From positions 186,001 through 250,000 of the forward strand of contig NIVC01000096.1 in NCBI GenBank assembly GCA_002269645.1: 64,000 nucleotides of DNA, read 5' to 3'. Both the position numbers and the translations under genes were made by a program. This document shows, in pieces, positions 6,941-31,085 of this stretch (position 1 is its first letter; the number at the start of each line of letters is the position of its first letter). The notes beneath the pieces were generated by a model. It had not been told where the DNA came from and did no database searches. It saw nothing but the letters and a program-made list of their open reading frames with translations. This DNA is from Macrostomum lignano (lineage: Eukaryota).

Positions 6941-6945
6941 ATGCA

Positions 6946-7354: not shown

Positions 7355-7890
<536 letters not shown>

Positions 7891-9630
7891 GTGAGTAGTT
7901 TATCAAGTTTGGACTTAGGATTAGATGTTTATCGATGAACTAAATTCAAGTCAAACATTTCTGTTATTCGAATACTTGAACTCGATTTGGAAACAATTCA
8001 ACGAACTCGTGCAATCTGCAGCTCTCGTCCCTAGCATTCAATAAAATCGTCCCAGAATTGTACGTTGATATTCATAGAAGCATACATGTATTATACGCGA
8101 TGTTTTGTTTTGTTTTAGCACCGGTTATCTTCTGCCATCACACAGCGGTGGAACAAATGACAGGACCGGAGGAGATGCTTTTCTTTATTGGAGCCACCAT
8201 TTCTATATCTGAAAGCAGCCGAGAAGTGCCTCGTTAGGCTTCAGTTCGTGTGCATTTTTATGAGCTCTACAATTTCATCCCAGCTGCCGCCGATGAGGTG
8301 GGGAACCGCGTTCCTAACGACGGCGGGGTTTACACAACACAGCGCATGCAATTAATAGCACTAGACATGCCCGTAACTACGGGGGCGAGGGCTAGATGGT
8401 TAGACTTAGCGGATTACTCTGGTTGCGTTAGAGCATCTGGGGGGAGCTCAGTTCACTGTCCTTCTGTGCGGGCCGGGCCAGCCAGCCACCCCTCCGTTGC
8501 CACGTCAGGTCGGGGTTGGGCGTCGGTCCCGGGCTTGCCTGCAGCTCCTCCCCAGGAGCGGCCTCCGCGCTGGGCTCATTAAGAATTCTCCGCTTGTCAA
8601 CCGTCCAGGTCAAATTGCCGCCTCGCCTCGCTATGACTGAAATATTTCATATACTATGACTGCAATATTGCAGTTATAGGATTACTGCAATCAATATTTA
8701 CTGACTGCAGTAACATACATGTATTAAGAGCTGCTTAGCGGATTGCAATCATCCTACAGCTTATGCAAAATGAGTTTAATTTACAGGTACATGTTTGACA
8801 GTGATGCTTTTTGAAGACGTCCCATATATTGTTATAAAAATATTCACTTAACCTGCTAGCCTACTGGATTTGACTTTACAACGCTTGAAAACAATAAATC
8901 TGATAGTTTAGTTTCTTAGGAAGCCACAGATTAGTACAGAGTGAGTCTTCATTCCCGAAATTGTATTCCCTCACGTCAGTAGCAGACAGACTCAAAATCT
9001 GCAGCATTGGCCAGCTACAGGATACGGCAGCTTTGCAGATGGCAAGCGGCACACTGCATGCTCACCTCCATCTACAACAAATTTTGCTCTGCTTCAAGCC
9101 TACCTACCAGCATGCTGGCAGCCTGTCGGACAGAGAGGTGAGTAGCGCCTACCTGCACTGCCAAACGGGGGGGGCGGGGGCGGCGCAAGAAATTCCATGC
9201 AGACCCCCATGCTCTGCTCAGATACTCAGAGCCATATAACCATGCCAGCCAGTTGCCACTGGTATCCCAATTGGTGAGTGGCCAAGAGACGACTAGGAGG
9301 GAGTGGGGCAGAGGGAGAGGAAGGTAAGGGAGGCAGACAGGCAAGGAGACAGACCTGCACTGGGAGGAGGTGGTAATAGGAACTCTGGGATTAAAACGGC
9401 GGAAAAGGTGTGCTGCTGCTCCAATGGGAGCTACTCCTGCAAATCGGCAGACTCAACAGTTCTGAGTTGAGCACCCCTGTCCTGTCCAATACAATACTCG
9501 CACCCTGTGTTATAAGTCAAAGGAATCACAGCAACAGTGTTGGTTAGTGCTGCAATGGAATAGAATTGTTTTTGTCTGATGCAGCAAATCATGCTTAGTG
9601 AATTAAATTATGTTGTAAAACACTTGCTCG

Positions 9631-9925: not shown

Positions 9926-10076
9926 ATTGCCATGGTAACCGCAATTGTTCCCGGAAACGCATGCACGCAACGCTGAGGAATTAAGCATAAAGAAGCGAGG
10001 GGAGAGGCTACCATAAATAAAGCAAGTTTAGTTTGCAGCAACTTGCAGTATTTCAGTCTTAAAAGTTCCGGTAAGT
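9926..10076 (+). promoter_or_regulatory. Candidate promoter and non-coding leader exon: RFX X-box-like ATTGCCATGGTAAC (9926-9939), donor CCG|GTAAGT at 10071
   Basis: Consensus donor, no ATG in the ~80 nt before it, acceptor-led exons downstream need an upstream donor. Confidence 0.45.
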
Positions 10077-10154
10077 TTATTTCGATAATTCATTGTTGGC
10101 TTTGGTATACTCGTACAGGACAATTGCGATAACAAAAAATCTGTATGCTGTGTG

Positions 10155-13100
10155 GGGGATGCTTGCTATCTGGGGGATGCTTGCTATCTGGGTGGATGCT
10201 TGCTATCTGGGTGGATGCTTGCTATCTGGGGGATGCTTGCTATCTGGGGAATGCTTGCTATCTGGGTGGATGCTTGCTATCTGGGGGATGCTTGCTATCT
10301 GGGTGGATGCTTGCTATCTGGGGGATGCTTGCTATCTGGGGAATGCTTGCTATCTGGGGAATGCTTGCTATCTGGGGGATGCTTGCTATCTGGGTGGATG
10401 CTTGCTATCTGGGGGATGCTTGCTATCTGGGGAATGCTTGCTATCTGGGGAATGCTTGCTATCTGGGGGATGCTTGCTATCTGGGTGGATGCTTGCTATC
10501 TGGGTGGATGCTTGCTATCTGGGGGATGCTTGCTATCTGGGTGGATGCTTGCTATCTGGTGGATGCTTGCTATCTGGGTGGATGCTTGCTATCTGGTGGA
10601 TGCTTGCTATCTGGGTGGATGCTTGCTATCTGGGGAATGCTTGCTATCTGGGGAATGCTTGCTATCTGGGGGATGCTTGCTATCTGGGTGGATGCTTGCT
10701 ATCTGGGGGATGCTTGCTATCTGGGTGGATGCTTGCTATCTGGGGGATGCTTGCTATCTGGGGAATGCTTGCTATCTGGGGAATGCTTGCTATCTGGGGA
10801 ATGCTTGCTATCTGGGGGATGCTTGCTATCTGGGTGGATGCTTGCTATCTGGGGGATGCTTGCTATCTGGGGAATGCTTGCTATCTGGGGAATGCTTGCT
10901 ATCTGGGGGATGCTTGCTATCTGGGTGGATGCTTGCTATCTGGGTGGATGCTTGCTATCTGGGGGATGCTTGCTATCTGGGTGGATGCTTGCTATCTGGT
11001 GGATGCTTGCTATCTGGGTGGATGCTTGCTATCTGGTGGATGCTTGCTATCTGGGTGGATGCTTGCTATCTGGGGAATGCTTGCTATCTGGGGAATGCTT
11101 GCTATCTGGGGGATGCTTGCTATCTGGGTGGATGCTTGCTATCTGGGGGATGCTTGCTATCTGGGTGGATGCTTGCTATCTGGTGGATGCTTGCTATCTG
11201 GGGGATGCTTGCTATCTGGGGAATGCTTGCTATCTGGGGGATGCTTGCTATCTGGGTGGATGCTTGCTATCTGGGGGATGCTTGCTATCTGGGTGGATGC
11301 TTGCTATCTGGTGGATGCTTGCTATCTGGGGGATGCTTGCTATCTGGGGGATGCTTGCTATCTGGGGGATGCTTGCTATCTGGGTGGATGCTTGCTATCT
11401 GGTGGATGCTTGCTATCTGGGGGATGCTTGCTATCTGGGTGGATGCTTGCTATCTGGTGGATGCTTGCTATCTGGTGGATGCTTGCTATCTGGTGGATGC
11501 TTGCTATCTGGTGGATGCTTGCTATCTGGGGGATGCTTGCTATCTGGGGGATGCTTGCTATCTGGGGGATGCTTGCTATCTGGGGGATGCTTGCTATCTG
11601 GGGATGCTTGCTATCTGGGTGGATGCTTGCTATCTGGGGGATGCTTGCTATCTGGGTGGATGCTTGCTATCTGGGGGATGCTTGCTATCTGGGGAATGCT
11701 TGCTATCTGGGGAATGCTTGCTATCTGGGGGATGCTTGCTATCTGGGTGGATGCTTGCTATCTGGGGGATGCTTGCTATCTGGGGAATGCTTGCTATCTG
11801 GGGAATGCTTGCTATCTGGGGGATGCTTGCTATCTGGGTGGATGCTTGCTATCTGGGTGGATGCTTGCTATCTGGGGGATGCTTGCTATCTGGGTGGATG
11901 CTTGCTATCTGGTGGATGCTTGCTATCTGGGTGGATGCTTGCTATCTGGTGGATGCTTGCTATCTGGGTGGATGCTTGCTATCTGGGGAATGCTTGCTAT
12001 CTGGGGAATGCTTGCTATCTGGGGGATGCTTGCTATCTGGGTGGATGCTTGCTATCTGGGGATGCTTGCTATCTGGGTGGATGCTTGCTATCTGGGGGAT
12101 GCTTGCTATCTGGGGAATGCTTGCTATCTGGGGAATGCTTGCTATCTGGGGAATGCTTGCTATCTGGGGATGCTTGCTATCTGGGTGGATGCTTGCTATC
12201 TGGGGGATGCTTGCTATCTGGGGAATGCTTGCTATCTGGGGAATGCTTGCTATCTGGGGGATGCTTGCTATCTGGGTGGATGCTTGCTATCTGGGTGGAT
12301 GCTTGCTATCTGGTGGATGCTTGCTATCTGGGTGGATGCTTGCTATCTGGTGGATGCTTGCTATCTGGGTGGATGCTTGCTATCTGGGGAATGCTTGCTA
12401 TCTGGGGAATGCTTGCTATCTGGGGGATGCTTGCTATCTGGGTGGATGCTTGCTATCTGGGGGATGCTTGCTATCTGGGTGGATGCTTGCTATCTGGTGG
12501 ATGCTTGCTATCTGGGGGATGCTTGCTATCTGGGGAATGCTTGCTATCTGGGGGATGCTTGCTATCTGGGTGGATGCTTGCTATCTGGGGAATGCTTGCT
12601 ATCTGGGTGGATGCTTGCTATCTGGTGGATGCTTGCTATCTGGGGGATGCTTGCTATCTGGGGGATGCTTGCTATCTGGGGGATGCTTGCTATCTGGGTG
12701 GATGCTTGCTATCTGGTGGATGCTTGCTATCTGGGGGATGCTTGCTATCTGGGTGAATGCTTGCTATCTGGGTGGATGCTTGCTATCTGGTGGATGCTTG
12801 CTATCTGGTGGATGCTTGCTATCTGGTGGATGCTTGCTATCTGGTGGATGCTTGCTATCTGGTGGATGCTTGCTATCTGGGGGATGCTTGCTATCTGGGG
12901 GATGCTTGCTATCTGGGGGATGCTTGCTATCTGGGGGATGCTTGCTATCTGGGGGATGCTTGCTATCTGGGGGATGCTTGCTATCTGGGGGATGCTTGCT
13001 ATCTGGGGGATGCTTGCTATCTGGGGGATGCTTGCTATCTGGGGGATGCTTGCTATCTGGGGGATGCTTGCTATCTGGGGGATGCTTGCTATCTGGGGGA

Positions 13101-15337
13101 TGCTTGCTATCTGGGTGGATGCTTGCTATCTGGGGGATGCTTGCTATCTGGGGGATGCTTGCTATCTGGGGGATGCTTGCTATCTGGGGAATGCTTGCTA
13201 TCTGGGGATGCTTGCTATCTGGGTGGATGCTTGCTATCTGGGGGATGCTTGCTATCTGGGTGGATGCTTGCTATCTGGGGGATGCTTGCTATCTGGGGAA
13301 TGCTTGCTATCTGGGGAATGCTTGCTATCTGGGGAATGCTTGCTATCTGGGGGATGCTTGCTATCTGGGTGGATGCTTGCTATCTGGGGGATGCTTGCTA
13401 TCTGGGGAATGCTTGCTATCTGGGGAATGCTTGCTATCTGGGGGATGCTTGCTATCTGGGTGGATGCTTGCTATCTGGGTGGATGCTTGCTATCTGGGGG
13501 ATGCTTGCTATCTGGGGGATGCTTGCTATCTGGGGGATGCTTGCTATCTGGGGGATGCTTGCTATCTGGGGGATGCTTGCTATCTGGGGATGCTTGCTAT
13601 CTGGGGGATGCTTGCTATCTGGGTGGATGCTTGCTATCTGGGGGATGCTTGCTATCTGGGGGATGCTTGCTATCTGGGGGATGCTTGCTATCTGGGGGAT
13701 GCTTGCTATCTGGGGGATGCTTGCTATCTGGGTGGATGCTTGCTATCTGGGGGATGCTTGCTATCTGGGGAATGCTTGCTATCTGGGGGATGCTTGCTAT
13801 CTGGGGGATGCTTGCTATCTGGGGGATGCTTGCTATCTGGGGGATGCTTGCTATCTGGGTGGATGCTTGCTATCTGGGGGATGCTTGCTATCTGGGTGGA
13901 TGCTTGCTATCTGGGGGATGCTTGCTATCTGGGGAATGCTTGCTATCTGGGGAATGCTTGCTATCTGGGGAATGCTTGCTATCTGGGGGATGCTTGCTAT
14001 CTGGGTGGATGCTTGCTATCTGGGGGATGCTTGCTATCTGGGGAATGCTTGCTATCTGGGGAATGCTTGCTATCTGGGGGATGCTTGCTATCTGGGTGGA
14101 TGCTTGCTATCTGGGTGGATGCTTGCTATCTGGGGGATGCTTGCTATCTGGGGGATGCTTGCTATCTGGGGGATGCTTGCTATCTGGGGGATGCTTGCTA
14201 TCTGGGGGATGCTTGCTATCTGGGGGATGCTTGCTATCTGGGGGATGCTTGCTATCTGGGTGGATGCTTGCTATCTGGGGGATGCTTGCTATCTGGGGGA
14301 TGCTTGCTATCTGGGGGATGCTTGCTATCTGGGGGATGCTTGCTATCTGGGGGATGCTTGCTATCTGGGTGGATGCTTGCTATCTGGGTGGATGCTTGCT
14401 ATCTGGGGAATGCTTGCTATCTGGGGGATGCTTGCTATCTGGGGGATGCTTGCTATCTGGGGATGCTTGCTATCTGGGGGATGCTTGCTATCTGGGGGAT
14501 GCTTGCTATCTGGGGGATGCTTGCTATCTGGGGGATGCTTGCTATCTGGGGGATGCTTGCTATCTGGGGGATGCTTGCTATCTGGGGGATGCTTGCTATC
14601 TGGGGGATGCTTGCTATCTGGGGGATGCTTGCTATCTGGGTGGATGCTTGCTATCTGGGTGGATGCTTGCTATCTGGGGGATGCTTGCTATCTGGGGGAT
14701 GCTTGCTATCTGGGGGATGCTTGCTATCTGGGGGATGCTTGCTATCTGGGGGATGCTTGCTATCTGGGGGATGCTTGCTATCTGGGGGATGCTTGCTATC
14801 TGGGTGGATGCTTGCTATCTGGGGATGCTTGCTATCTGGGGGATGCTTGCTATCTGGGGGATGCTTGCTATCTGGGGGATGCTTGCTATCTGGGGGATGC
14901 TTGCTATCTGGGTGGATGCTTGCTATCTGGGTGGATGCTTGCTATCTGGGGAATGCTTGCTATCTGGGGGATGCTTGCTATCTGGGGGATGCTTGCTATC
15001 TGGGGGATGCTTGCTATCTGGGGGATGCTTGCTATCTGGGGGATGCTTGCTATCTGGGGGATGCTTGCTATCTGGGGGATGCTTGCTATCTGGGGGATGC
15101 TTGCTATCTGGGGGATGCTTGCTATCTGGGGGATGCTTGCTATCTGGGGGATGCTTGCTATCTGGGGGATGCTTGCTATCTGGGGGATGCTTGCTATCTG
15201 GGGATGCTTGCTATCTGGGGGATGCTTGCTATCTGGGGGATGCTTGCTATCTGGGTGGATGCTTGCTATCTGGGGGATGCTTGCTATCTGGGGAATGCTT
15301 GCTATCTGGGGAATGCTTGCTATCTGGGGGATGCTTG
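10155..15337. repeat. 5.2-kb minisatellite, ~280 units of 17-19 bp, invariant core ATGCTTGCTATCTGG with variable G-linker
   Basis: Direct reading; source of the 887-1739 aa artefactual ORFs. Confidence 0.98.
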
Positions 15338-16149
15338 TAGAATATATAAGCAACCACTTTCAGCAGAGTAGCAATTTTTATCTATTTTTAATTCTTAAGT
15401 TTGAAAAAAATAAATTTCTGGTTTTAATTTACGATTAAAAATAGTCAGACAAACAGGCTTCGACTGTTACAAGAAGCTGTTAAAAGGCAAAAATCAGGGT
15501 GATCGGGGTTCGGGTACTGGACTTCCCTGAGCTCGCCGAGTGGCATACGAGGGTGAGCAGCGATCCCCGAGACGTACACAGCCAGAATTGGATGGACCAT
15601 GCAGGAGTGTAACTGTTAAGCCCTAGTGATTGATGCGCGGATGATGAGGCTGCGAGCAGATAGCCACTCGGCAGCGACAGAGAGGAGAACAGTGAACACG
15701 AATATCCTGGTATAGAACAGAAACGCAAAACAGAGAAAAGAGAAGATATTTTCTGTGGTGGTAGTGGGTCGTAACTTTGGGAGGCCTTAGCTTTCCGCTT
15801 CTTGCTTTCCGCATTGTTTCCTGAGACTTTTTGATATTAATTCTAACTGTATAACTGTCAAAGAAATAGGAAAAACGGGACGGCTTAGTTTTAAAACTTT
15901 CATCAACTTGATAATTGCGACAATTAGCGCTGTATCCACAATTCTTGAAATGTTTAAATAGCCCAGCCAGGGCCCTGTCCCCTTTCAATCATGCCAAAAT
16001 ATTTGTTGTTCAATGATTTTTCATTGTTTTTTATATGCAACATCATTAAACAGAAATTTTATTGTGCCCCTAAGAAAATAAATCTTGGCTGCGCCTTTGA
16101 GCCGAACAACGAGCGTACATTTATAACTGCCAACACCTTTCCTGTGCAG

Positions 16150-16284
16150 GTCTATGGCTACGGAAACTCCTGAAAGTTCGGAAAAAAAGGAGCGCAAATG
16201 CCTCCATCGATGCCGGTCTTCATCAAGTCTGCCTGATCCGGTTAAAAAGAGAGGGCGAAAATTGCGGACTCTTCTATCATTCAG
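16150..16284 (+). CDS. Variable exon V1 (135 nt, phase 2-2; ATG 16154; MATETPESSEKKERK...LLSFR)
   Basis: CCTGTGCAG|GTCTATGG acceptor, CAG|GTATGG donor, open frame, paralogous flanks. Confidence 0.65.
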
Positions 16285-16787
16285 GTATGGCTATTAAGTT
16301 TTTGTCTTTCATTTCTCATCTCTCATGTCGCTCATTCCAGTTCTATAAAAGGCAGTTTTGCTTCTTCTGATACTAATTGATTTCATTCAGTCTGATACAA
16401 TAATAAAAACGGGACTTTACTACTGGTAGATATTAAACAAGAAGATAAAAAGGTGCGAAAATAGGTTTCTTCTAAAAGGTGCGAAATAGAGTTCCTCCTT
16501 GCTAGTCTATCGCTTTAAAGTAGTCATTTCAATTCCACTTTGGCTCAGAGAACAGCAATATATCACTTTCATTTATAGCTTTACGATTACATCCTTCACT
16601 TACATTTTTTATCATGCCTAAAAATTGTGTACGAGCGTACAATGATTCTTCGTTGTGTTTTAATTATACGTAACATCATTAAACAAAATTTTTGTGCCCC
16701 CCCCCAGAAAATAAATATTGGCTGTGTCTTTGAGCCTAACTACGAACTAACTAACCTAACTAACTGCCAACACCTTTTCCTGTGCAG

Positions 16788-16916
16788 GTCTATGGATACG
16801 GAGGCGCCTGACAGTTCAAGAAAAAAGGAGTACGAAAAGCTCCAATCGATCCGGACCGATCCAATTGAACCGGTTGAGATGACAGGGCCAGAATTATCAA
16901 CTTCTCAATCATCCAG
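16788..16916 (+). CDS. Variable exon V2 (129 nt, phase 2-2; ATG 16792; MDTEAPDSSRKKEYEK...SQSSR)
   Basis: CCTGTGCAG|GTCTATGG acceptor, CAG|GTATAG donor, open frame. Confidence 0.65.
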
Positions 16917-17024
16917 GTATAGCTAGAAATCAGCGCCCCCTGTTGGGGAGCTAACAAAAAATAAAGTACAAATTTTTGAAAAAAACTACATGTAGCGTCT
17001 CTTTGCAATAACCTCAGCAATCTT

Positions 17025-17120
17025 GAGGCCTTGACATCTCAGCAATTCCCCCACAAGCCTTAACATATCAACTTCTCCCTCCCCCCCTTGACATCTCAAC
17101 GATGCCTCCATAAGCCTCAA
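17025..17120. repeat. Degenerate dispersed copy of the 30-bp BTAF1 intron-4 minisatellite (reverse orientation)
   Basis: GCCTTGACATCTCAGCAATTCCCCCACAAG matches reverse complement of the 30-mer. Confidence 0.7.
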
Positions 17121-17533
17121 AATCTGAAGCGGTACTGCACTACTGGTATAGTCTAATATGCTAAACATCAATATCTTGCTTGCTTGTATATCACTAAAAA
17201 TTAACCTTAGTAATTAAACAAGATCATAAGAAGGTAAGTTTCATGAAGAATTAAAATCATATGTTATAAATTTTACGTGAGTTTCGACATCCGCAAAATC
17301 TTATGAATTTTCCGCTTCAGATTTCCTCCTTGCTAGTTTTTACCCGGGTTAGCATGTTAGTGATAACAAGCCGCTAAAAGGAGCGCTTTAAAGTAGTCAT
17401 TTCTATTCCACTTTGGCTCAGAGAACAGCAATCTATCACTTTCATTTATAGCTTTACGATTACATCCTTCACTTACATTTTTTATTATTTATGCAACACA
17501 AAGCCTGAGTGCTAGCACCATTTTTAACTGCAG

Positions 17534-17627
17534 ATCCGAGGACAAAGAAGACTGTGGATGGGGAATCGAAGCGGTTCGATCATTCAACGACGAACCCCCA
17601 AAATCGCCACCACTCCCCATTATGTAG
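17534..17627 (+). other. Candidate fifth, out-of-phase module exon (94 nt)
   Basis: TTTTTAACTGCAG| acceptor, TGTAG|GTTTGA donor, sits between the conserved pre- and post-exon modules. Confidence 0.35.
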
Positions 17628-17804
17628 GTTTGAGCTTCAATGTTTTGTGCCATCCACTCCGATAGCTGGCGAATTTTTGATCAATTTGTAGCTGCTGTGA
17701 CGGGCCTTTCAGGACGGAATTTCCCCTTCCCGTTAATCCCGTTAGCTAATTCTATCCACAAAATTGCCAAATAAATCGGCAAAAAAGTCTGAAAACTGAT
17801 GCAA

Positions 17805-20800
17805 GACCGCACTACCGGTGTACCAAATATAAATAGGCTGCCGAGGACTGACAAGAGCTAAACTGTAGTGGCTCGTAGCAGGCTTCATCAGAGAGTATAT
17901 TTTTTAATTATATTTTTAATAGTAACTACGGCTGGGCTCAAGCTTAAAGTAAATATTCAACTCATGGTCTCATACGTCTCATGGTTCAGATGGGTTACAA
18001 ATATGAAGATTTATAAAGAAACTAACATGTATACCAAGCTCTCCGTTAATGTCGGTTCCCATTATCCCTATAGTAGCTCGTAGTTCCGTGGGTCAGAGAT
18101 TGTTGAAATCAGTTTTATTACATTAATGAACTGTGAACCCTGGATAATAAGAGAATAGCAGACGTGTCGATACCGTGCTCGAGATCAAAAGAATCTCCTG
18201 AAGAGTTTACGAGTGGCGATCAGTCACTCAAAACCCCACTTCCAGAACTGAAGCCTGGGAACAGAATTCAGTGATCACACAGAGTATCGGAATCGGTCAG
18301 CAGATCCTATCCAATCTCTGAGGAATAGGAAGGCCTCAAATTCAGTAGCTCAGTAAAATCGACTGATCAGTAATGGCTGGCAATAAAACCGCTCTCGATA
18401 ATCAAATAACGAAGACTCGAACAAAGACTTACCCAATCGGTATCACTTTCCCTCGGAGATATAGTTCTGTCGGACTCGTCAGTTGGCTCTGAGTCTCGAG
18501 AAACTGTTTAAGTCTCTTGGCCGCTCCGAGTCTGAGATATTAGATCGGGGTTTCGGCTTGTATTTATAGGCAAATATTCTTGCGAGAATAAGGATATTTC
18601 GATGAGGTGAAGGGTTCAGTTTTTTGAAATTTGACCCTTTGACAGTTAAATACGAGTAGAAATTTATACAATAGATTTATATCGAATAAAATTAATTTCG
18701 GGGCATCATTTACCTTTTTGGGGTCGTGATTCGTTGTTTACGATATTTGAGGTAAACATATATGGTTCATCTCTTGCTTTATAAATGATTCAAGCTTTTA
18801 AATTCTCCTGCAGTATTTATGCTATTCTACTTACAGTAGCATTTTGTGAACGTGTCTCTCTACACTCTCAGCAAAAATCCTCGCTCCGGCATTTATCTCG
18901 GCTACTTCACTGATATTTCGCACAGAATCGCTAAATCGGCCTGGCCCCCAAAATTGAGCTGGATAGGCGATGCCCTTGGGTTGGTAGCAAGAGGTGTTGT
19001 ATGTCCGCCTAGAGTCTCCCCCTCGGAAACAAGCCTTCCAGACTCACTCCAATAGTTAGCCCTTTCCAAGACTTCTGGGTTTCCCGCTCTTGGACGGCTT
19101 TTCAGTAATAATCCAATTCTGTTTTTCGCGCACTCCCGAGGACCTGTCTGCTGGGGGGTAGCCTGGGTGGACTCGGTCCTAGCACCGTCCCTGATTCCAC
19201 TGTTGGGTTGGCGGTGTCTTGTACCGTAGGCTTGAAGTCCCTCGCTCTTTCCCTAGCTTAAGCTGGGGCCCAACTAAATTGGTTACTCGGACTCCGAGCG
19301 GGTATCTCGCGTGCACAGTTTTTTCTGTGCCCCTGGACAGTGCCCTCTTGCGGTAGAGCCCCTCCAAGGGCTGATCCGCGGGTAGCCCCGTAGCTTCCCA
19401 CCCCCGTTTAACAACAAATCGGCCAAGACAGGCTTGGGCATGGCTCCAAACTCGTTGCCCCGTAGCAGGCTGGGAGCCCCCGTCTCATTAGGGAATTTTC
19501 CTTGGATGCACTTTTATGCAGGTGGCTGGTGGCGGCTACGCACCCTTGGCATGTACCTAGAAACAACCGGACCTGCTACTGTAGTTAAGTTCGAGGGACC
19601 TTGGTCACTCAGTCATACAAGAAGCTACTCACAATTAACTGAGGGAAGCAGTTCCAGGGATTCGAATTCTTAAAGGCAATGTTAATTGAAACTCATTGAT
19701 TTCAATAAGTCTGAAGCAGGACCGCACTACCGGTGTACCAAATATAAATAGGCTGCCGAGGACTGACAAGAGCTAAACTGTAGTGGCTCGTAGCAGGCTT
19801 CATCAGAGAGTATATTTTTTAATTATATTTTTAATAGTAATTACGGCTGTGCTCCAGCTTAAAGTAAATATTCAACTCATGGTCTCATACGTCTCATGGT
19901 TCAGATGGGTTACAAATATGAAGATTTATAAAGAAACTAACATGTATACCAAGCTCTCCGTTAATGTCGGTTCCCATTATCGCTATAGTAGCTCGTAGTT
20001 CCGTGGGTCAGAGATTGTTGAAATCAGTTTTATTACATTAATGAACTGTGAACCCTGGATAATAAGAGAATAACAGACGTGTCGATACCGTGCTCGAGGT
20101 CAAAAGAATCTCCTGAAGAGTTTACGAGTGGCGATCAGTCACTCAAAACCCCACTTCCAGAACTGAAGCCTGGGAACAGAATTCAGTGATCACTTACGGT
20201 TGCGGGCTCCTCTTCTTTGTAGTCCGGGTTGCAATCGCGCGCTGCAAGATTCTCCTAGCTGATTCTGAAGTCGGCGAATATGAGAGCATTTTAATTAAAT
20301 CGTCGTCAATGTGTTCAATAATCCAAATCGGAGATGCGCCCTAATAACAAAGTCAATTCTATAACAATAACGAGGTCCCATAGAGGGCGTCTTCCTTTTA
20401 GAAATAACAGAATCTGAATTGTGTGCCCTTATCTGTTACTCTAGGGTACCAAACTCAATCAAATCAATAATTCTCCAAGAGTATCGGAATCGGTATCGGA
20501 ATCGGTCAGCAGATCCTATCCAATCTCTGAGCAATAGGGAGGCCTCAAATTCAGTAGCTCAGTAAAATCGACTGATCAGTAATGGCTGGCAATAAAACCG
20601 CTCTCGATAATCAAATAACGAAGACTCGGACAAAGACTTACGGAATCGGTATCACTTTCCCTCGGAGATATAGTCCTGTCGGACTCGTCAGTTATCTGAG
20701 TCTCGAGAAACTGTTGAAGTCTCTTTGGCCGCTCCGAGTCTGAGATATTAGATCGGGTTTTTGGCTGGTATTTATAGGCAAATCTTCTTGCGAGAATAAG

Positions 20801-20885
20801 GATATTTCGATGAGGTGAAGGGTTCAGTTTTTTTATATTTGACCCTTTGACAGTTAAATACGAGTAGAAATTTATACAATAGATT
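17805..20885. repeat. Tandem duplication of an unclassified ~0.9-kb unit (17805-18677 and 19720-20885, second copy with 284-bp insertion at 20194-20477)
   Basis: Near-identical sequence by eye; each copy has minus-strand CCTATAAATA and GTAAGT. Confidence 0.85.
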
Positions 20886-21177
20886 AACTGAGGGAAGCAG
20901 TTCTAGCGATTCCAATTCTTAAAGGCAATGTTAATTGAAACTCATTGATTTCAATAAGTCTGAAGCAGGACTGCACTAACTGTACCAATATAAGTAGGCT
21001 GCAGAGGGCTATCGAGCTACAATGACGCGCTTCTAGCAGCATTCATTAGTGATCATATTTTTTCGAGTCACTGTGCCTGCTTAAGCTCTAAGCAAATATT
21101 TAAATTATAGGACAAACTTCTGAAGTAAAGGAAAAATGAAGCCCAACTTTAACTGCCAACTGCTTTTTTAAATGCAG

Positions 21178-21342
21178 GTCAATGGGAAACCCTGCTGAAT
21201 TCAAGCTGGAGCACAAGCTGGGGCACAATCTCTTCTTAGAGGTGATCTTTGAACTCGAACACCAACGAGCTGCTGCTACAGGCCGGTCTTCATCAAGTTT
21301 TTCTGAAGGGAGAGAGCCACAAAAATTTTTTATTCGACTCAG
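21178..21342 (+). CDS. Variable exon V3 (165 nt, phase 2-2; ATG 21182; MGNPAEFKLEHK...FFIRLR)
   Basis: AAATGCAG|GTCAATGG acceptor, CAG|GTATGT donor, open frame. Confidence 0.65.
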
Positions 21343-21679
21343 GTATGTAATTCCGTTTTTATCTTTCATTTCTCATTTCTCAGATTCCAGGGATTACAAT
21401 TCTAAAGGGCAATGTTGCTTCTCCCGATACCACTTGGTTTCATGGAGCCTCAAAACTGAAGTGGGCTGGAGAGTAACTGACACTCGTTAAGCCCTACTAA
21501 GAGTGACGCGCTGATGATGAGGCTGAGAGCAGGTAGCCAATCGGCAGCGAAAGAGAGGTGAACACGGGGTCTGGAGGCGTACAGACACTTCAGAGGCCTG
21601 AGTAAAACACGGATGGGGGAGAGCAGTGGGCTTGGTGGGGCCAAGCCACACAGGGCTGGGGGTGGGGCTATAAACTACA

Positions 21680-21975
21680 CATGGCTGGGGTTGGGGCTAA
21701 GCTACACAGTGCTGGGGCTGGGGTTGGGGCTAAGCTACACAGTGCTTGGACTGGGGTTAGGGCTAAGCTACACAGTGCTGGGGCTGGGGTTGGGGCTAAG
21801 CTACACAGTGCTGGGGCTGGGGTTGGGGCTAAGCTACACAGTGCTGGGGCTGGGGTTGGGGCTAAGCTACACATGGCTGAGTGGGGCTAAGCTACACATG
21901 GCTGAGTGGGGCTAAGCTACACATGGCTGAGTGGGGCTAAGCTACACAGGGCTGAAGGTGGGGCTAAGCTACACA
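21680..21975. repeat. G-rich ~33-bp minisatellite GGGGCTAAGCTACACAGTGCTGGGGCTGGGGTT
   Basis: Direct reading. Confidence 0.9.
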
Positions 21976-22860
21976 GGTTATGGGGAACGTGCAAAATACT
22001 GCTTTTTTCACAATTAAACGCTATCTTACGCACTTTTAAAACGCTAACCAAAATATACTAAATTAGGTACAAAACTACTGTAGTTTTTTTCCTACAGTAT
22101 TGTAATTCTGGTATCCTACAGTACTCAGAGCGGCATGCAAAAATCCTTGAAAATCCTGGTGAGAGCAGAAATAAAAATAGAGATACGAGAAGAAACTTTC
22201 CGTGGGGGTAGTGCCTCGTAGTGCCGCCTCCAGGTTGGCACTCCAGCTACCCAAGGACTACTTAAGAAGTAGTTTAACGAAGTGACTTCAGTGGTCCTTG
22301 CAGCTATCACCTTTACCTTATCCCAGTTGGCATGCCGCTCTGTGACGACAGCCGGTATTATACTTTACTCATCAGACAGCTCCTCAAGCTCCATGCTGTC
22401 TGCAGTTTCTCTGTAATCGCGTCGCATGACAACCCGAGGGGGCCGCGCAAATTTCAACTCCACTGGAGGCCTTCGCAAGTGCTTTCCGCAATTTTTTTCC
22501 TGAGACTTGGATATTAGTTTTATCTGTACAATTGTCAAAAAATAGGCAGATAAACGGGACGGCTTAGTTCTAAAACGTTTCAGCGTGATACTTTTACATA
22601 CTACTTGATTAATCTACCAATGAACTGCTGCTTTCAGGACGAAATTTCCAGTATCTTCACCCTTTGAAGCGCTAGTCGAAGGGGACTGCCCCGGAATCAT
22701 GCCACAATTTTTGTCTCCAATGATATTGCGTCGTGTTATGCAACATCATTAAACGTACATGTAATTAATTTATTATCAAGTCGGCCTAAAAAGAAATGCT
22801 GCAGATGTAGAGGAATAAATGAAGCCTAACTATAACTGCCAACTGCTTTCTCAAATGCAG

Positions 22861-23049
22861 GTCAATGGGCAATCTAGCTGGATTCGAAGCTTGGAAAACT
22901 CTAAACGAAATGAAGAAAAAGGACCTCCTAGAGACCGCGATCTCTGCACTCAAACACGAACTAGATGATCTTACCAGGACTTCATCAGGTCGGCCTGATT
23001 TGGTTGAAGAGAGAGAGCCACAAGCAACATTAATTCGTCCATTCTGCAG
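22861..23049 (+). CDS. Variable exon V4 (189 nt, phase 2-2; ATG 22865; MGNLAGFEAWKTLNEMKK...RPFCR)
   Basis: AAATGCAG|GTCAATGG acceptor, CAG|GTACAA donor, open frame. Confidence 0.6.
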
Positions 23050-23441
23050 GTACAACAATTCAATTTTTGTCTTTCACTTCTCATTTCTCAAGTTCTAGGG
23101 ACTCCATTTCCTAATGTGACTTTTCCTAAAACTAGTTGATTTCATTGAGTCTGAGCACTGAAGCAGGACTGCACTACGCTTGTACTGGTAGCTAAATCAA
23201 TATAAATTATTAATACGCATGCACCACTTTTAGTATTTAGAGGCTGCAGAGGACTGACGAGAGCCAAAATGTCGCGCTTGTAGCAGCCTTATTAAAAAGC
23301 ATATCTAAAAAGTCCCTAAAGAAATCGGCAAAAGGGGACGACTTAGTTTGAAAACCCTCCAACATAACACTTTTACTCATTGCTTGCTCAATCTACCAAT
23401 GAACTGCTCCTTTTTCTACAAAATTTTCACCTATAAATAAA

Positions 23442-23786
23442 TCTAATCTACAATAAAAATGTTCCCTGTTGTCCCATGGCTTGGAGAATCTCACTCTACT
23501 CGGGAATTCCCACTGAGTAGACTCGGCTATTTTCAACACTTTAGAAACCTATTCTACACGTACGTATTCCAATTTCAGTTAATTTGACATTCCATACGCA
23601 CACTATCGTAGCTATTCAGATAAAGAATTCCCAAATCACCTTTCGTGCTGGAATTCAGTATCAGTGACGCTGACCTTAATTGTTAATATTGCGATTTTTT
23701 CAGAATTAATGAATATAAAAATGGGATTGATGAGGACGCACTTTTTTCCAAATCCCGCGCTAGCACGTGGGCTCTAAACTTACTAG
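23442..23786 (+). mobile_element. Short non-autonomous Helitron-like element
   Basis: 5' A|TCTAATCTACAATAAAAATG; 3' hairpin CCCGCGCTAGCACGTGGG then CTAG; interrupts a conserved module; 3' flank is C rather than canonical T. Confidence 0.5.
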
Positions 23787-24312
23787 CCTACTAACAGTGG
23801 ACAATGGGCATTTTTATCCTTTTTCTGCGAATTGTCATAGAATCTATACTAGATATAATGTTTGGTCATACTAGTAGTCGCAATAACATAGGCGCAGCTT
23901 TTTGGGTCATAAATAATCGCTTTCGAAGCTGGTCTGACAGCCACCTGCGCCTCACTCAGTGTTGAGGCGGGCGCCAGATGGTCTGAGGGGATGCGAATGA
24001 TAGCTTTTTCTCATCATTTTGACAGGCCATCAGATTTATGAGGTCAGAGCCTATTGTTCGGGTTCACTCAAGCGTGTGACAGTTTTGGCAGCTATGCGTT
24101 TTACCCCTAAAAGTACTTTGGGATTAGCGATTAGCGATTTCTCTTCATTATCTTCACTTTCTACTTAATAAGAGTTTTCTAATGTATATTTTTTCATTAA
24201 TTTTTGTCAATCCTACGCGAAAAGTCATAAATCATTTTTTTGCGATTTTGATTGATTTATGGCCGCACCTGTCATCTTTTTACGACCCTGTGGGGACTGA
24301 TAGGATCTCCCG

Positions 24313-24450
24313 GTCACGTGATTCTGGGTGGCAACTAGCTCAGCCAATCAGAAAATTCGACGCTAATTTTAACAAACCGTCTCAGCCAATCAGAATCGAC
24401 GTGTTCCATTATAACAAACTGCGGTCCAGTTGGCGGCTATTTAAACCGGT
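24313..24450 (+). promoter_or_regulatory. LTR-like promoter cluster: GTCACGTGA, two CAGCCAATCAG boxes, CTATTTAAA
   Basis: Motif order and spacing; parent element not identified. Confidence 0.4.
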
Positions 24451-26173
24451 GTTTTTGGCCCGCTCGGACTTCAACCTGCGGTTACCTTGCTGTTCCGGGT
24501 GCTACCCCTGCAAACCTCCTTGCGATCGGGTGCTACCCTTGGCTCCACCGGCCAGGAATTTACCGTCGTTTCTTGATCCCCGGATTGCGACTTCCCCCCA
24601 TCATTATCAAGGACGAATTCCCCCGGTCATCAGTAGTGAACATCAAAGTTAAGAGCATCACCTGCTAGCTATCTGCGAAGACTGTGACATCAGCATCATC
24701 CCGGGCCTTCAGCTGCGAAGCACTAAGCCGATTCGGTCACTGTGGATTACCTGGTCTCCGGCTGTTGAGTTTCTGATTGGTTGGGTGAGAGGCTACCTAG
24801 ACTTGCTTGATTGGGTGATTCCCTATCTGTCCCCTGTTTCAGTAGCTGGATTAGGCGCACACTTTTGCTCATTTTGTTCAGTTGTACTGTTACTGAGGCA
24901 GAAATCATTCAACAATACTGTTAGTAGTCCGAAACTCCAATTCAATCTGAAGTGTGAAGTTATTTAAGGAGAAGGTTAAATCTGACAATTATTTTTATCG
25001 GTTTTATTTCTTTGTTCACCGATGGCTCAGATGAGTAGCTAAGCTAGTAGGCGCCGGTCACAGTGGACCAATGGCAAGGCAGTTCTCAGTCGATCAATCT
25101 ATCAAATCAGTGAGCAAAATTGTCAATAGTGCAAAATCGGCTCCAGAGATGTACTCTGTGCACTCTGGGTTCGCCAAGCGGCTCGGGTAAATGAATCATG
25201 CGGTCTCTGAAGTTCGAGTTAGTCTATCATCAGCGCTATGAGAGGCTAGTTGGCGCGTTGAAGGCCAAAAGTACAATTCCTCGTATTTAGCAATGTAATA
25301 GTACATGTAGCTACCCCATAGTCTCGCCACTGCAAGAATCCCCTGCACAAGTCCCCTCTGTACCTGCATGGCCAATGCGATCTAGTCCCAGCAGTGTCCC
25401 TTGTCATCGGCTATGACTTCGAGATAGACAGCAAAAAGACACTAGTTGGCAGGTAAGTGCAAAGCCCCTTCTAGTCGGAAGCCCGATTTCGAGAGCCCCG
25501 GTGTGGTGAGCCAGGACGCACGGGCTGGTGGCAGCGAGTTAGCTTAGTCTGCGGATTAGCTAATTTCTACCTTCAAAATTCTCCCTGCTTGTCTCTCGCT
25601 GTCCCTCTCTTAGCTATAGGACCTAGACTGCTCGCCACACGATCAAGCTACCATGGTTTGATTAACTGGCTCAAATATTTCTGAGACCTGAGGCCCGAAG
25701 GCTTCCCCACAAGGGGGCCGAAAGGTCGAAACCCATCAGGATTATGGAGACAGTGAAAATTTTTGCACCGAAGCCTAATTGGAGCAACCTAATTGGTAGA
25801 TTATGCAAGCATCAAGTAAAAGTATTGTGTTAGCTAACTGATTCTTTAACTACTTTGGTCGACCCTTTTCTCGACTTCTGTGGCAGTTACACAGATATAA
25901 TTATTAGGATTACATGTATGAGTCAGTAGAAAATTTTTTAACTTTAAACTATATTTTTTCGCTTATTTAAGTTTCTTTTACTGTCAAGTTGTAGAATACA
26001 AGTTTAAAAAACCTTTTAACACTTGATTAACTGGCTCAAACAACTGTTTACACTTAAATAAGATTTTAAAGCAAAACGCTTGTTGTAAAAAGCTCGGAAT
26101 AGTCAGCTTAAATAAACATTGGTTTATTAGTAGGCAAACTAACGTTGATAAGATTATTTTTCTCACTATTTAG

Positions 26174-26966
26174 GCATCCAAAAGCAACAACCGATCAAGA
26201 AGCAACAACCGATCAACAAGCAACAACCGATCAAGAAGCAACAACCGATCAAGAAGCAACAACCGATAAAAAAGCAACAACCGATCAAAAAGCAACAACC
26301 AATCAAAAAGTAACAACCGAGCAAGAATCAACAACCGAGCAAGAATCAACAACCGAGCAAGAAGCAACAACCGAGCAAGAAGCAACAACCGATCAAGAAG
26401 CAACAACCGATCAGGATACTAAAGTTTCCAATAATCAACAAAACTCCCTATTCGACAAGAACTCGGTGCTCACAGACTTGACGTACTCTCTGTGCTGCAT
26501 TCCCAACCTGCCAGTTAGACTGACCAGCCACCAGAGCGTCAGAGGCATCTACGCTCGGTACTTGATGCCAGATGAGGCAGTGAGGAAGACCACTGATTGG
26601 GAAGAGAAGAAGCAGTCAGTTCTGCAGATGCTGCCCACCAGTCTGCGTGAAGTTTTCACTGAAGAAGAACTCCGTGAAGATGAAAAGCTGTGTGTAACTG
26701 AGCTGGCAATCAGCATTGCAGAGGGCGAGTGGCCGTTTGAAGAAAAGGACGCGAGAAGTTTGCTTCAGAACTCAGCTGAAATCGTTCGCAGTCACCTCCA
26801 AGCCCTGCAACTGAGCGCAGATCAGCCTCGGGACTGCTGCCCAGTGGCAGAGGCCTGGTTCTGCTTCATGGTGGCCGTGTGGAGCCGCCTCAGGACTGCC
26901 GTGACCGAGCCTGAGGACGAGGCTGAGAAGTTCGACGCATGTATGGGCAATAGGACTGTGAGTTGA
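26174..26966 (+). CDS. Downstream exon C1 (phase-2 acceptor): Thr-rich ATTDQE repeats plus novel domain shared with 28032 ORF
   Basis: TTTTCTCACTATTTAG|G CAT CCA acceptor; open to TGA 26964-26966; motifs EAVRK..DW, IVR...AL.LS, AE.WF match the paralogous ORF; possible donor GTGAGT at 26958. Confidence 0.75.
26182..26412 (+). repeat. Coding 18-bp repeat AAGCAACAACCGATCAAG (ATTDQE), ~13 copies
   Basis: Direct reading. Confidence 0.92.
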
Positions 26967-27289
26967 GTCTTCTGGCTTGTTCGTCACGCTCTGGACACGA
27001 TCATATTTGAGTATGTGAGGACCATGGTTTTTGTTTGCCCCAGATACTGTAACATTATTTCATTTGTCAAGTGCACACCTTGAACTTTTTAAAATGGGGT
27101 CCTATAGAAACCTCAAATTTTTAACTGAACGAAAAATCGAGCATTTTTTCATTGAGAATTCAATGAGAAAATCATGTGGTGGTGCCGAAATTTCATGAAG
27201 TGTTGATATCAAGTCATAAAATGGTCGACCTTTCCTCGACCTACACGTTTGTAAGGATTACTCTATTTATTAACTCGATATTGCTGGAT

Positions 27290-27422
27290 CGATCAAAGCT
27301 TTTTTATTTTAAGACGTTTGATCTGAAAGACTTTCGATTTGAAGTGCTGCATTATTCTGATCCATCGCCTTGGCCAAAAACATGTACAATTTCGCGCCTT
27401 CAAGTTCTACCGGAGCCGCTCA
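27290..27422 (+). pseudogene. Orphan ~130-bp fragment of the unknown ORF family (SKL..FKTFDLKDFRFEVLHYSDPSPWPKTCTISRL)
   Basis: Clear match to 1154-1280 and 29042-29175; no splice sites evident. Confidence 0.85.
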
Positions 27423-27962
27423 TTTTTTTTTCCTTATTATAAAAAACTGTGATAATTCTGAACAATATTGTTAATGAGAGAGATAAAGAGAATTTTTGCC
27501 ATTTTCACCTATTTTTCTCATTTTCTATTTTCCCCTATTTTTCCTATTTTCCCTTTTGCAATTTTTCCTGTTTGCCAATTTTCCTATTTAGCCATTTTTT
27601 CTATTTTGCCATTTTTTCTATTTTTGGCTGGCTCGAATAAAAATAAAACAGCTAAAAGTCTTAAAATTTACAAGGCTTTGCTGTTCTTCTCTTGCCACAT
27701 TATTTTCACAATTTATGATAGGGATAGCTCACCAAAGAGCAGTGTGCATTTCACAAACTTCTAAACTACAGTTTCTCGCTTTTTATAATTCAGTTTTATC
27801 GCTAGCTATAGAAGGAAAAACAGTTAGCAGTACAACAAAACTTGATATTTTAGCAGAACAAAAGCTTTTTAGTTTCCTGAGAAATTGAAGCCACATTCAA
27901 TTGCTTCTTAATTCAGTTAGCTGTATAGTTTAAATTTGAACTTGACTTTTCCTAACTCTCAG

Positions 27963-29960
27963 TTCCAGCAGCAGTAACAGATCGCGCCTGGAAAAAGAAA
28001 GAAATAAATAAAGCAACAACAGCAGCAACAAATGCAGCAACAAATGCAGGAGCAGCAACAACAAGAACCGAAAAAGACGAGTGCAGTTTTGCACATCGTC
28101 GTAAATGGCGGTGGGCGAGCGTCGAGAATTCAGCTCAGCATTTTTGATGCCGCAGAGACTAGGTCGCACAAACTGGAACAAAAGACACTTGAAACAGGTG
28201 AGCAAATATGGTACTCAAAACTGGATACTGACGGCGATAGAAGATTGGAAAATATAGAAGTGACAGATGATGGCGAACTCGAAAGCAAGACAACCAAAGA
28301 AATACTGCAATTCAAACTGAGTGCTACCATTGAACAGGAATCACTCGACTATCCGATAGAGTTTGGCGAAGGGACCCGGTTTGTGCCTCACTTTGTCAAG
28401 GACAGCCATGTGGAGTTTGTTATTTACTGTGACCTGACAAATGGCGAGTTCCGAGTCATTCCGATGGCACCGATCTGCCTTATCTTCGAATTTCAATCCA
28501 AGTTGGAAAACACCAATACTAATTATCAACTTGAAATTAAACACAACAATGATAAGATCGAATTCCACAAGTCTCGTAAACTTTGCACAAAGTGCATGCA
28601 ATGCGATCCTGCAATGCAAGATCACGGAGACGCACAGGTCTGGACGCTAGATAAACCCAGCGAGATTATCTACCTGGCCAATTATAATGACTCCATGAGA
28701 CTGCCTACCGGAGAGCCACTGAGAGTTAGAGTCCTGAAAGCTCAAGCTCAAGAGCCTATGGTACCTTTCACAGAGTTTTACGACATCAATCTGCCTGTCG
28801 ATTATGCAAATCCAACGCAAACGTATCTAATCAAACTGGACCCTCAAGCTCAGCCCAGAGTGTACGCAGTCACTCACATTGAGCTGCATTTCGAATGCAA
28901 GATTCCAAATGTCGAATTTTTCGAGATTCGGGGAAACTGCAGCGACGAGTTTGGCTTATGGGAAAAGCCTTTTAAATTTGAGATCGAAAACGAACCAAAA
29001 AAGCCGTTATGGGTGGCTGCGGCAGTTGTGGAAGATGAGGGGTCAAAGCTTTTCAAGACGTTTGATCTGAAAGACTTTCGATTTGAAGTGCTGCCCCATT
29101 TCAAAAAGCAACAAGAGGCGTTTTGGCTAAAAACATGTACAATTTCACGCCTTCCAGTTCCATTGGAGCCGTTCTCCGTATTTATAATTGAAATGTGTAA
29201 TCTAAAAACAAGAAATATTGTTTCGCTTCAACCCAGGCACTCAATCGAACCAGTAGTCAATGAAGTCATTCGCAGGTTGCGCGAGATTTCAGATAGTCGT
29301 TTGAGCACGAAAGGCTTAACAATTCTTGTTCCTAAGTTACGCAGACTTGGCCAAATCTACAGTGAGGACGATGATCCGCAAAGAACTCACGACATCTGGG
29401 GCGAAGACCTTCCAATGGAGACACCTGATGATCTTGACCCAGCAGCGAAGAGCGGATTGACCTATCTGCAGCTGAGGCAGACTCGGCATCAACATGAGAG
29501 CCTCTGTGGAAGACGAATCGTTTTGAAGAGGCTTAACAAACAGTATCACCGCTATCAGAACGAAGCTGTTAGAAAACTCTTGGACTGGAACGCCGATGAA
29601 GTAAGAAAAGCTGCGCTGAATAAAATCTGCAGAGGTGGCGCATCCGATGGCGAATACAAAAACATTTTGCAGACTCTTGCCACAGAAATTCACGAAGGCA
29701 CTTGCAGAGTCGAAGATCACTCGCTGCTGCTGTGGCTGGCTGCTGCCATTGTTCGCGGCAGAGCTGAGGCTTTGATTCTGAGTCCCAGGGCTCAGACATG
29801 GCAGCAAACTAATTGGGAACGGCACATGGTCGCTGCGGAGTCCTGGTTTCGAGTCGTCTTGGCGCTCTGGAAGACTCGACCCGATAAGAGAGCAGACTTT
29901 CGCGAGGCAATCCGCAGAGCCGGTGAAAGTCCCGCCTTTTACACTTGGCGCGAGAATTGA
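27963..29960 (+). CDS. Downstream exon C2 / 642-aa ORF of unknown family (ATG 28032); paralog of 2-2083
   Basis: Strong acceptor TTTTCCTAACTCTCAG| at 27962; 1.9-kb open frame; apparent 1-nt frameshift at 28006-28008 upstream of the ATG. Confidence 0.85.
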
Positions 29961-30865
29961 ATGTAACTTTCGAATGATATTCGGTTTGATTTACTGATTG
30001 CATGCAGTAGCTATATTCACTTTAGCTATTTTCACTTTCTCTCGCTAACCTGAAATTCATATCGAGAAACCATAACTGTAAAATTTAGTTTTATGTAAAA
30101 GATATTTCAGCTCCGGATGTGTCTTACATTCATGTACATGTAATCTGTCCGTTTGCCATTGTACGACCAAGGACCATGTAGCAGCATATCAGGACGCTAT
30201 GAGAATAATTTGTTCCCATCTTCTGAGGTGGGAAAAATAATTTTTATGACAAAATCAATCAAGGAACAAAATAAAAGTTTAGCTAATGACACCTGTGAGT
30301 ATTGACAACTTGGGCTTAAAAAATAAAAAGCAATGTGAAAAATGAAACTTTCAGGGCACAACAATAAAGAAGAAAGCAGAGCAAAATGCTGTGCATGTTA
30401 AATTAAAAGAATGGCAATCTTCTATTTGCAATCATTAAATTTGTGATGAAAAAATGATTGTTTCCTTTTCTATCTCCGTAGTGCATTTTTGCGTTAATCG
30501 GCCTCCAAAAACTGCACGATCTTTGAGTGTAGCGTCCGGATATACTGCTAGTGGTCCTTGTGTACAACCTATTATATGCTTTACACTGCAGACTCTCAAA
30601 GTACATTATCATTTTCCTAGCTGTTAGCAATTCGGTAATTTGCTAGTTTGCTGTTAGAAACAATATGTAACAAAAAGTTACCAATATTTCTGAACTATCT
30701 TTGCCAAAGCAAGACTGATATGTGTTTCAGCATGACCTGCTGTAACGTGCCTATAACTATTGGTGTCAGTAGTTAGAAATTATGTCTTTAAATTCTGCTT
30801 ACTTCAAATATACTACACATACTACTAATACACACCATCTAGCCGGTAATATTCGAGTCAGTCAC

Positions 30866-31085
30866 TGAAGTTCGCTGAAGGGATTCTTTGGCCGCTGCCG
30901 CAATGCCAGGCGACAGTCAGCCCGGCAGCCAGCAGTCATGCCAGCTCCGCTGACCCCCTGACGCTCACACCGGGTGTACATCGGGCCTGACTGTCTCGCT
31001 GTCAGACAGGGTGCACATCTTGCGTGTTGGCCTGCACTGTCACAGGTTAGAGAGCCACCTACTCATGAGTTTCTCTCTCAAACAT
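30866..31085. mobile_element. 220-bp insertion with 8-bp TSD (TCAGTCAC)
   Basis: TSD at 30858-30865 and 31086-31093; absent at the orthologous site (~3020) of the left duplicate. Confidence 0.7.

Follow-up and report, generated by a model that had tools for sequence, protein, structure and literature searches.

A cluster of paralogous phase 2-2 exons in a Macrostomum lignano orphan gene, probably tandem duplicates of one coding exon

Tandemly duplicated symmetric exons of the same phase form a general class, in which many members are constitutive or act as simple cassettes. In protocadherin and UGT1A genes each variable exon is a first exon, has its own promoter, lacks an acceptor and encodes a whole functional domain. 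Both classes, together with the Dscam1 exon array, offer comparisons for four small exons (V1 to V4) on the forward strand of a 64,000-nucleotide (nt) stretch of the flatworm Macrostomum lignano (contig NIVC01000096.1, positions 186,001 to 250,000, assembly GCA_002269645.1), referred to below as the window. The original prediction, made from sequence alone, took these exons for an undescribed variable-constant gene that produces diverse N-termini by exon choice or combinatorial chaining, in the manner of protocadherin, UGT1A or Dscam1. We incline, with a little more than even confidence, to the reading that V1 to V4 arose by ordinary tandem duplication of a single coding exon, in an orphan gene that evolves fast and has symmetric phase-2 exons. 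Nothing that we found shows a protocadherin- or Dscam-style exon-choice system.

The four exons lie exactly where they had been predicted, with the predicted acceptor motif, AG|GTA ends, lengths and phase 2-2 (Table 1). Their common acceptor context is TAACTGCCAAC…TGCAG|GTC(T/A)ATGG; a TAAC branch-point-like motif, a pyrimidine tract and a CAG acceptor are present in all four, each exon ends in CAG|GTA, and in a multiple alignment of the V units the invariant columns cluster at the acceptor block and at CAGGTA. Zero-mismatch sites for TAACTGCCAAC occur only at 16124, 16761, 21150 and 22833, each 26 nt ahead of a V acceptor, and those for GCAGGTCWATGG only at 16146, 16784, 21174 and 22857; allowing up to one mismatch, GCAGGTCWATGG matched six times against 0.66 expected, and no shuffle gave six. 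The sequence GCAG|GACAATGG, one mismatch off the V acceptor-ATG motif, stands at 3216-3227 and 31279-31290, in both copies of a segment duplicated within the window and downstream of the large gene there; the peptides behind these sites are not V-like.

The phase 2-2 frame is open in every V exon, the remaining forward frames holding one to six stops each, with the exception of one further open forward frame in V1. The V exons (43-63 codons each, the shortest intron measuring 503 nt) can be read as a chain V1-V2-V3-V4 into the terminal exon at 26174, with the frame open down to the TGA at 26964-26966. An ATG four bases past the acceptor is invariant across all V copies, and the donors (GTATG, GTATA, GTACA) differ at +4/+5 from the M. 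lignano consensus GT[G/A]AG (PMC8629364). Antisense open reading frames (ORFs) over V1, V3 and V4 were set aside: this strand is closed in V2, and a paralogous gene model described below (P0006) uses a V-type exon on the forward strand.

The V exons are true paralogues, paired V1/V2 and V3/V4 at about 74-75% nt identity over their full length within each pair, and all four carry the motif R(S/T)SS…PD.V(K/E)(K/E)R in the same frame; the RSSSS of V1 and V3 and the EREPQ of V3 and V4, which had been pointed out beforehand, are both present. Similarity continues into the introns. Each unit has a conserved upstream block, and a downstream block of about 130 nt is common to V1, V3 and V4, V2 being a short local copy without it; relics of the downstream block with no exon persist at about 17796-17866, 19634-19820 and 20883-21063. 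Upstream similarity between V1 and V4 reaches up to 550 nt, and far-upstream blocks common to these two units imply that the duplicated unit was about 1.2-1.7 kilobases (kb). Because of the blocks shared among units and the exon-less relics, the array is best accounted for by a unit of roughly 0.6-1.7 kb that was unequally duplicated several times, insertions and partial deletions coming afterwards. The far-upstream blocks are not known RNA genes, in that an Rfam search over 15300-28100 gave no match, and their candidacy as a coding first exon was rejected, the ORF not being conserved between the two copies. Two copies of a 102-nt intronic segment (16511-16612 and 17384-17485) are 98% identical, a duplication far younger than that of V1/V2, which it flanks.

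Paralogy of exon and flanking intron between neighbours, an identical phase 2-2, a chain that remains in frame and open when read serially, and conserved splice signals are all features that the locus shares with the class of tandem exon duplications; it differs in that its V peptides show no purifying selection, contain no known domain and belong to a gene seen only in Macrostomum. In a global alignment of the V1 and V2 units the upstream block is 88% identical against 75% for the exon (Fisher p = 0.008). For V3 and V4 the values are 89% over 56 nt upstream, 74% in the exon and 73.5% in the downstream intron, the difference between flank and exon not being significant, and V1 compared with V3 or V4 gives about 75% in every compartment, with many more gaps within exons. 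The earlier contrast between conserved flanks and diverged exons thus stands for some 50-140 nt at the 3' splice site (88-89% against 74-75%) and falls away in the downstream intron, which in V3/V4 is as diverged as the exon. Nei-Gojobori ratios of nonsynonymous to synonymous divergence (dN/dS) are 0.98 for V1/V2 and 0.90 for V3/V4. By these measures exon bodies diverge about as fast as introns, with no detectable selection on V residues, and the faint peptide similarity noted earlier can be explained by about 25% neutral nt divergence plus in-frame insertions and deletions (indels), needing neither purifying nor diversifying selection.

Conservation in the V units is confined to the 3' splice-site block and donor core, together with an open reading frame and a length divisible by three. 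If substitution were neutral, at 13% per lineage, an exon would stay open with a chance of 0.33-0.41; the five V-type exons found over two loci are all open and all of a length divisible by three, for a joint chance of roughly 1e-2 to 1e-4. The improbability of these open frames and lengths under neutrality argues that the V exons are translated now or were until recently, probably as unstructured sequence. Single-sequence structure prediction of the V chain gave a predicted local distance difference test (pLDDT) score of 45, which is weak evidence for disorder; this score and that of the constant domain (54) were judged too low for fold searches.

Used by itself as a homology query, the V chain led to the UniProt entry A0A1I8HLH2 (M. 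lignano, 250 amino acids (aa); P0005), which we could reproduce residue for residue from the window as 16154-16284 + 16788-16916 + 17534-17623 + 21178-21342 + 22861-23098, that is, V1, V2, a 90-nt exon, V3 and V4 end to end. The V exons are already in a UniProt/WormBase-derived gene model and so are not undescribed, and that model contains, between V2 and V3, a fifth phase 2-2 exon that the original prediction had missed. The proposal that each V exon can be read through as R-S-M, on the other hand, is phase-compatible, and A0A1I8HLH2 does chain the V exons. The same type of search with the V-plus-constant chain returned only a paralogue of the constant exon, the (ATTDQE)n repeat having probably saturated the word index. 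An exhaustive HMMER search with A0A1I8HLH2 over 1.84 billion representative proteins matched only itself, leaving the V peptides without a homologue there; neither the terminal exon nor the large or inter-V ORFs matched a Pfam family; looking up exact proteins of the locus gave none on record apart from the older predicted model; and a literature search for the gene identifiers gave no match.

Downstream of V4, two phase-2 acceptors had been proposed to receive the V exons. The one at 26174 does open a long terminal coding exon of 263 codons. The one at 27963 yields, in phase 2, just 16 codons (SSSSSNRSRLEKERNK) ahead of a stop, and so provides neither a coding continuation nor a shared downstream coding exon. 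The terminal exon begins with an 18-nt coding repeat, (ATTDQE)n, at 26182-26413, followed by a C-terminal domain of about 180 aa that is predicted to be helical at low confidence. These roughly 180 residues are 82% identical to BOX15_Mlig022669g1, and the dN/dS of the domain between loci (0.46-0.65) indicates moderate purifying selection. The host gene would accordingly be placed, by sequence similarity, in the Mlig022669 family and looks to be a Macrostomum-specific orphan. The (ATTDQE)n repeat is much longer in one paralogous locus (L001, 7750-8350), and two others (L002 and L003) lack it and have a different N-terminal stretch before the shared domain.

These three paralogous loci were taken from the same assembly, whose GenBank annotation was built only from genome-guided RNA sequencing (RNA-seq) assemblies (StringTie/TACO/TBONE/TransDecoder) (PMC5730564). 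In L003, the model BOX15_Mlig022669g2 (P0006) is reproduced exactly by four exons, with all junctions in phase 2 and both internal exons multiples of three. Its V-type exon has the same acceptor context as those in the window, TAACTGCCAAC…GCAG|GTCTATGG, and because this RNA-seq-derived model splices it after exon 1, the context would work as an ordinary cis acceptor of an internal exon, the ATG there encoding the methionine of a Ser-Met inside the protein. A second L003 unit, of V3/4 type, has a start (ctataactgccaac…attcag|GTCAATGGGTAACCTAGCTGGA) that meets a stop; inserted sequence interrupts it, its 3' GT donor is gone, and it is a dead pseudo-exon. L002 is 96-99% identical to L003 outside the V region, in place of which it has an 11-kb block of satellite and retroelement, and its model (P0004) runs from the first exon straight to the terminal exon with no V exon. 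L001 has no V unit within 7.6 kb, L001 and L002 having been checked by motif and by sensitive blastn. The paralogue models thus carry a Cys-rich exon 1 and one V exon or none, and the differing V content of L001, L002, L003 and the window means that N-terminal content varies strongly between gene copies at the genomic level. Mlig022669g1 and g2 resemble the window gene in their homologous terminal exon and, for g2, in a V-type exon; they differ in having the Cys-rich exon 1 and no (ATTDQE)n repeat.

Further observations concern these loci. Cys-rich first exons of the form M..CC(Q/E)..NC.(D/A)C occur in L002 at 1759 (-), 7329 (+) and 10007 (+) and in L003 at 6511 (-) and 10013 (+); their presence on both strands suggests a gene family sharing this exon, including a divergently oriented neighbour. 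The V region of the window (15937-16469) is about 72% identical to L003 10325-10866, exon and intron alike, and 26442-31000 aligns with L003 14801-20317 at about 89-90% over the terminal exon and downstream gene and about 80% further downstream, a contrast suggesting different histories or rates for the two halves, 5' and 3', of the locus. Two L003 stretches homologous to the 90-nt exon at 17534-17623 are left out of the model from the RNA-seq-derived annotation, an in-frame stop interrupting one of the two; since these homologues go unused, the reality of that exon is uncertain.

As we picture it, one small symmetric coding exon, phase 2-2, would have been copied in tandem along with its flanking intron, and the copies would occupy the 5' half of a Mlig022669-family gene whose terminal exon (26174-26966) encodes (ATTDQE)n and the helical C-terminal domain. 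Since all junctions in the family are in phase 2, the frame survives the duplication, loss or skipping of an exon. In the window the V copies would most likely be read in series, as they are in A0A1I8HLH2, into one weakly constrained and probably unstructured N-terminal region, and we infer that they are transcribed and serially joined to the 26174 exon. Diversity of N-termini in the family would then be owed mainly to exons gained or lost in the genome from one gene copy to another rather than to dedicated exon choice.

Several points weigh against this reading. A0A1I8HLH2, although an exact translation of V1-V2-X-V3-V4 (X being the 90-nt exon), runs through the V4 donor (GTACAA) into the following intron, to a stop at 23098, and does not join the 26174 exon; the model may be partly ab initio and is probably truncated, and the joining to 26174 is likely. 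A homologue of exon 1 (M..CCQ..NC..C) was searched for in the window and not found, which leaves the 5' end of the gene undefined. Serial reading alone leaves the invariant ATG four bases after each acceptor unexplained. Finally, V donors that are sub-consensus at +4/+5 are a feature often seen in alternative exons; since every V exon is also symmetric, simple cassette or otherwise alternative use of the V exons is possible in principle. If the tandem-duplicate reading is true, the locus would be a clean small example of a lineage-specific gene growing and shrinking its N-terminus through duplication, decay and deletion of a phase-2 mini-exon, the setting for such turnover being the many gene copies of a hidden-polyploid flatworm. 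It would be useful for M. lignano annotation and involve no new mechanism; a notable case of isoform diversification would arise only if transcripts carried one V per mRNA or were trans-spliced at each V.

We think it unlikely, though worth weighing first among the alternatives, that the locus is a decaying partial duplicate in which expression of the V exons, perhaps of the entire gene copy, has ceased and the open frames are left over. Such a history would fit the segmental duplication with its truncated BTAF1 copy, the 5-kb satellite directly upstream of V1, the missing exon-1 homologue, the V dN/dS near 1 with exon bodies diverging like intron, the want of any recorded exact protein besides the older model, and the V unit that has demonstrably decayed in L003. 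It fits poorly with four V frames that are open and multiples of three in length despite at least 25% divergence and several indels (the joint chance given above), with invariant splice-site cores, and with a terminal exon intact over 263 codons whose C-terminal domain has a dN/dS of 0.58-0.65. The satellite itself (10153-15337) is 5.2 kb of about 285 copies of an 18-bp unit, TGGGGGATGCTTGCTATC, with 95% matches, lies immediately upstream of the V array, between it and the duplicated segment at the window start, and may mark a breakpoint that took away the gene's first exon.

We regard as improbable a scheme in which the V exons serve as alternative first coding exons, each with a promoter of its own and/or spliced-leader trans-splicing at its acceptor, with translation starting at the ATG four bases on, to give several N-termini on one constant exon. 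The ATG after every V acceptor invites this scheme, as do the phase compatibility of all V donors with 26174, the roughly 550 nt of upstream sequence common to V1 and V4, which could be promoter-like, and the trans-splicing of about 39% of M. lignano genes (PMC5730564; PMC8629364). Yet trans-splicing requires an acceptor with no cis donor upstream (an outron; PMC8629364), and V2, V3 and V4 are each preceded by a cis V donor, which favours cis-splicing and leaves only V1 as a possible outron; the same acceptor is moreover cis-spliced after exon 1 in the L003 model. The M. lignano spliced leader, CGGTCTCTTACTGCGAAGACTCAATTTATTGCATG, ends in ATG (PMC8629364), so that leader plus V would read …GCATG|GTCTATGG. 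The leader ATG would then lie four bases ahead of the V ATG in a different frame and open an overlapping upstream ORF of 8 codons; the frame from the leader ATG meets three stops in every V exon. There are, besides, only four such exons, and they encode no domain and show no detectable selection on their sequence. Use of the V exons as alternative 5' coding exons by trans-splicing at each acceptor, or their regulated skipping with the aid of an inverted intronic element near the constant exon, we consider very improbable; were it true, a flatworm orphan gene would be furnishing one shared C-terminal domain with a handful of different N-termini, in effect a counterpart of variable-constant genes that works by trans-splicing.

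Where their defining features could be tested, neither the protocadherin/UGT1A nor the Dscam analogy holds. Several related 5' exons upstream of a phase-compatible shared 3' exon do recall protocadherin and UGT1A genes. None of the V exons here fits the pattern of a promoter-bearing first exon that lacks a 3' splice site: every V has a normal, canonical acceptor, the L003 model uses its V-type exon internally, and the exons can be chained. Nor does any V encode a complete functional domain under selection, given 43-63 codons, dN/dS of 0.9-1.0, no homologues and a pLDDT of 45; one V unit is decayed in L003, and the expressed copy in L002 has no V exons. With Dscam1 the locus shares a tandem array of homologous same-phase exons and one complementary intronic pair, near V4 and the constant exon. 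It differs in V lengths that vary (129-189 nt) and are all multiples of three, so that multiple inclusion keeps the frame and exclusivity is not enforced; in introns of at least 500 nt, which impose no steric block; and in having no selector-like partners for V1 to V3. Thus neither frame, sterics nor pairing bars joint inclusion for every variant, and no docking or selector element is conserved in the related loci L003 and L001. Least credible of all is that inclusion of V4 is controlled by competing RNA pairing of docking/selector type, in which an element before 26174 pairs either downstream of V4, bridging the 3.1-kb intron, or upstream, looping V4 out: stretches complementary to 25792-25831 do lie after V4 (23361-23400, 40 nt, 83%) and before it (22588-22621, 34 nt, 82%), with duplex energies of -78 and -61 kcal/mol against about -30 ± 4 for shuffles, but such complementarity is expected by descent, since the element is an inverted copy of the repeated upstream block, V1 to V3 have no partner element, L003 lacks the inverted pair, and in L001 the inverted element could not be found.

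Table 1. Coordinates of V exons, associated blocks and related features in the window and in locus L003
Feature	Coordinates	Strand	Description
V1 exon	16150..16284	+	135 nt, phase 2-2; public model A0A1I8HLH2 starts at its ATG (16154)
V2 exon	16788..16916	+	129 nt, phase 2-2; paralogue of V1 (75% nt, 19/41 aa)
V3 exon	21178..21342	+	165 nt, phase 2-2
V4 exon	22861..23049	+	189 nt, phase 2-2; weakest donor of the four, CAG|GTACAA
Extra exon (RSEDKEDCGWGIEAVRSFNDEPPKSPPLPIM)	17534..17623	+	90 nt, phase 2-2, between V2 and V3; not a V paralogue; in public model, reality uncertain
V1 upstream intron block	16008..16149	+	conserved; holds branch-point-like TAACTGCCAAC, pyrimidine tract, CAG
Upstream-block equivalents	16637-16787 (V2), 21122-21177 (V3), 22804-22860 (V4)	+	conserved
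V4 downstream intron block	23050..23177	+	equivalents 16285-16400 (V1), 21343-21465 (V3); none in V2
Far-upstream blocks of V1 and V4 units	15612..15902	+	15612-15691 similar to 21482-21564; 15803-15902 similar to 22480-22582
Inverted copy of V-unit upstream block	25780..25870	+	about 300-390 nt before the 26174 acceptor
Terminal coding exon	26174..26966	+	phase-2 acceptor, 263 codons, stop TGA 26964-26966; homologous to last exon of Mlig022669g1/g2
Neighbouring single-exon gene, Mlig021936 family	28032..29960	+	own ATG; separate from V gene
L003 exon 1, Cys-rich (MANQCCQKSNCKACAN)	10001-10050		first exon of Mlig022669g2
L003 V-type exon 2	10544-10687		144 nt; acceptor ataactgccaacaccttttcctgtgcag|GTCTATGG, donor CAG|gtaatt; internal
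L003 exon 3	11868-11981		114 nt
L003 terminal exon	14551-15325		homologue of the 26174 exon

The neighbouring gene downstream belongs to a large forward-strand ORF at 28008-29957, which matches hypothetical proteins only in M. lignano, at 60-77% identity; these homologues begin at the corresponding methionine inside the ORF. The C-terminal domain of this gene and the domain in the 26174 exon are distant paralogues, about 28-30% identical. An isolated piece of this large gene (…KTFDLKDFRFEVL…PWPKTCTISRL…) lies at 27263-27430, between both genes, with 49% protein identity to residues 326-384.

The window as a whole is rich in minisatellites, and on its minus strand, between about 31.8 and 53 kb, lie exons of an SNF2 helicase of BTAF1/Mot1 type. 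The first 8 kb are a diverged tandem segmental duplicate of the region at 28-45 kb (1-3100 against 28000-31200, and 3500-7900 against 31600-45100), about 80-88% identical. Within this duplicate the 650-aa orphan gene recurs at 2-2080, cut off by the start of the window and with its (QQMQEQ)n repeat expanded, along with a truncated copy of the 3' BTAF1/Mot1-like exons.

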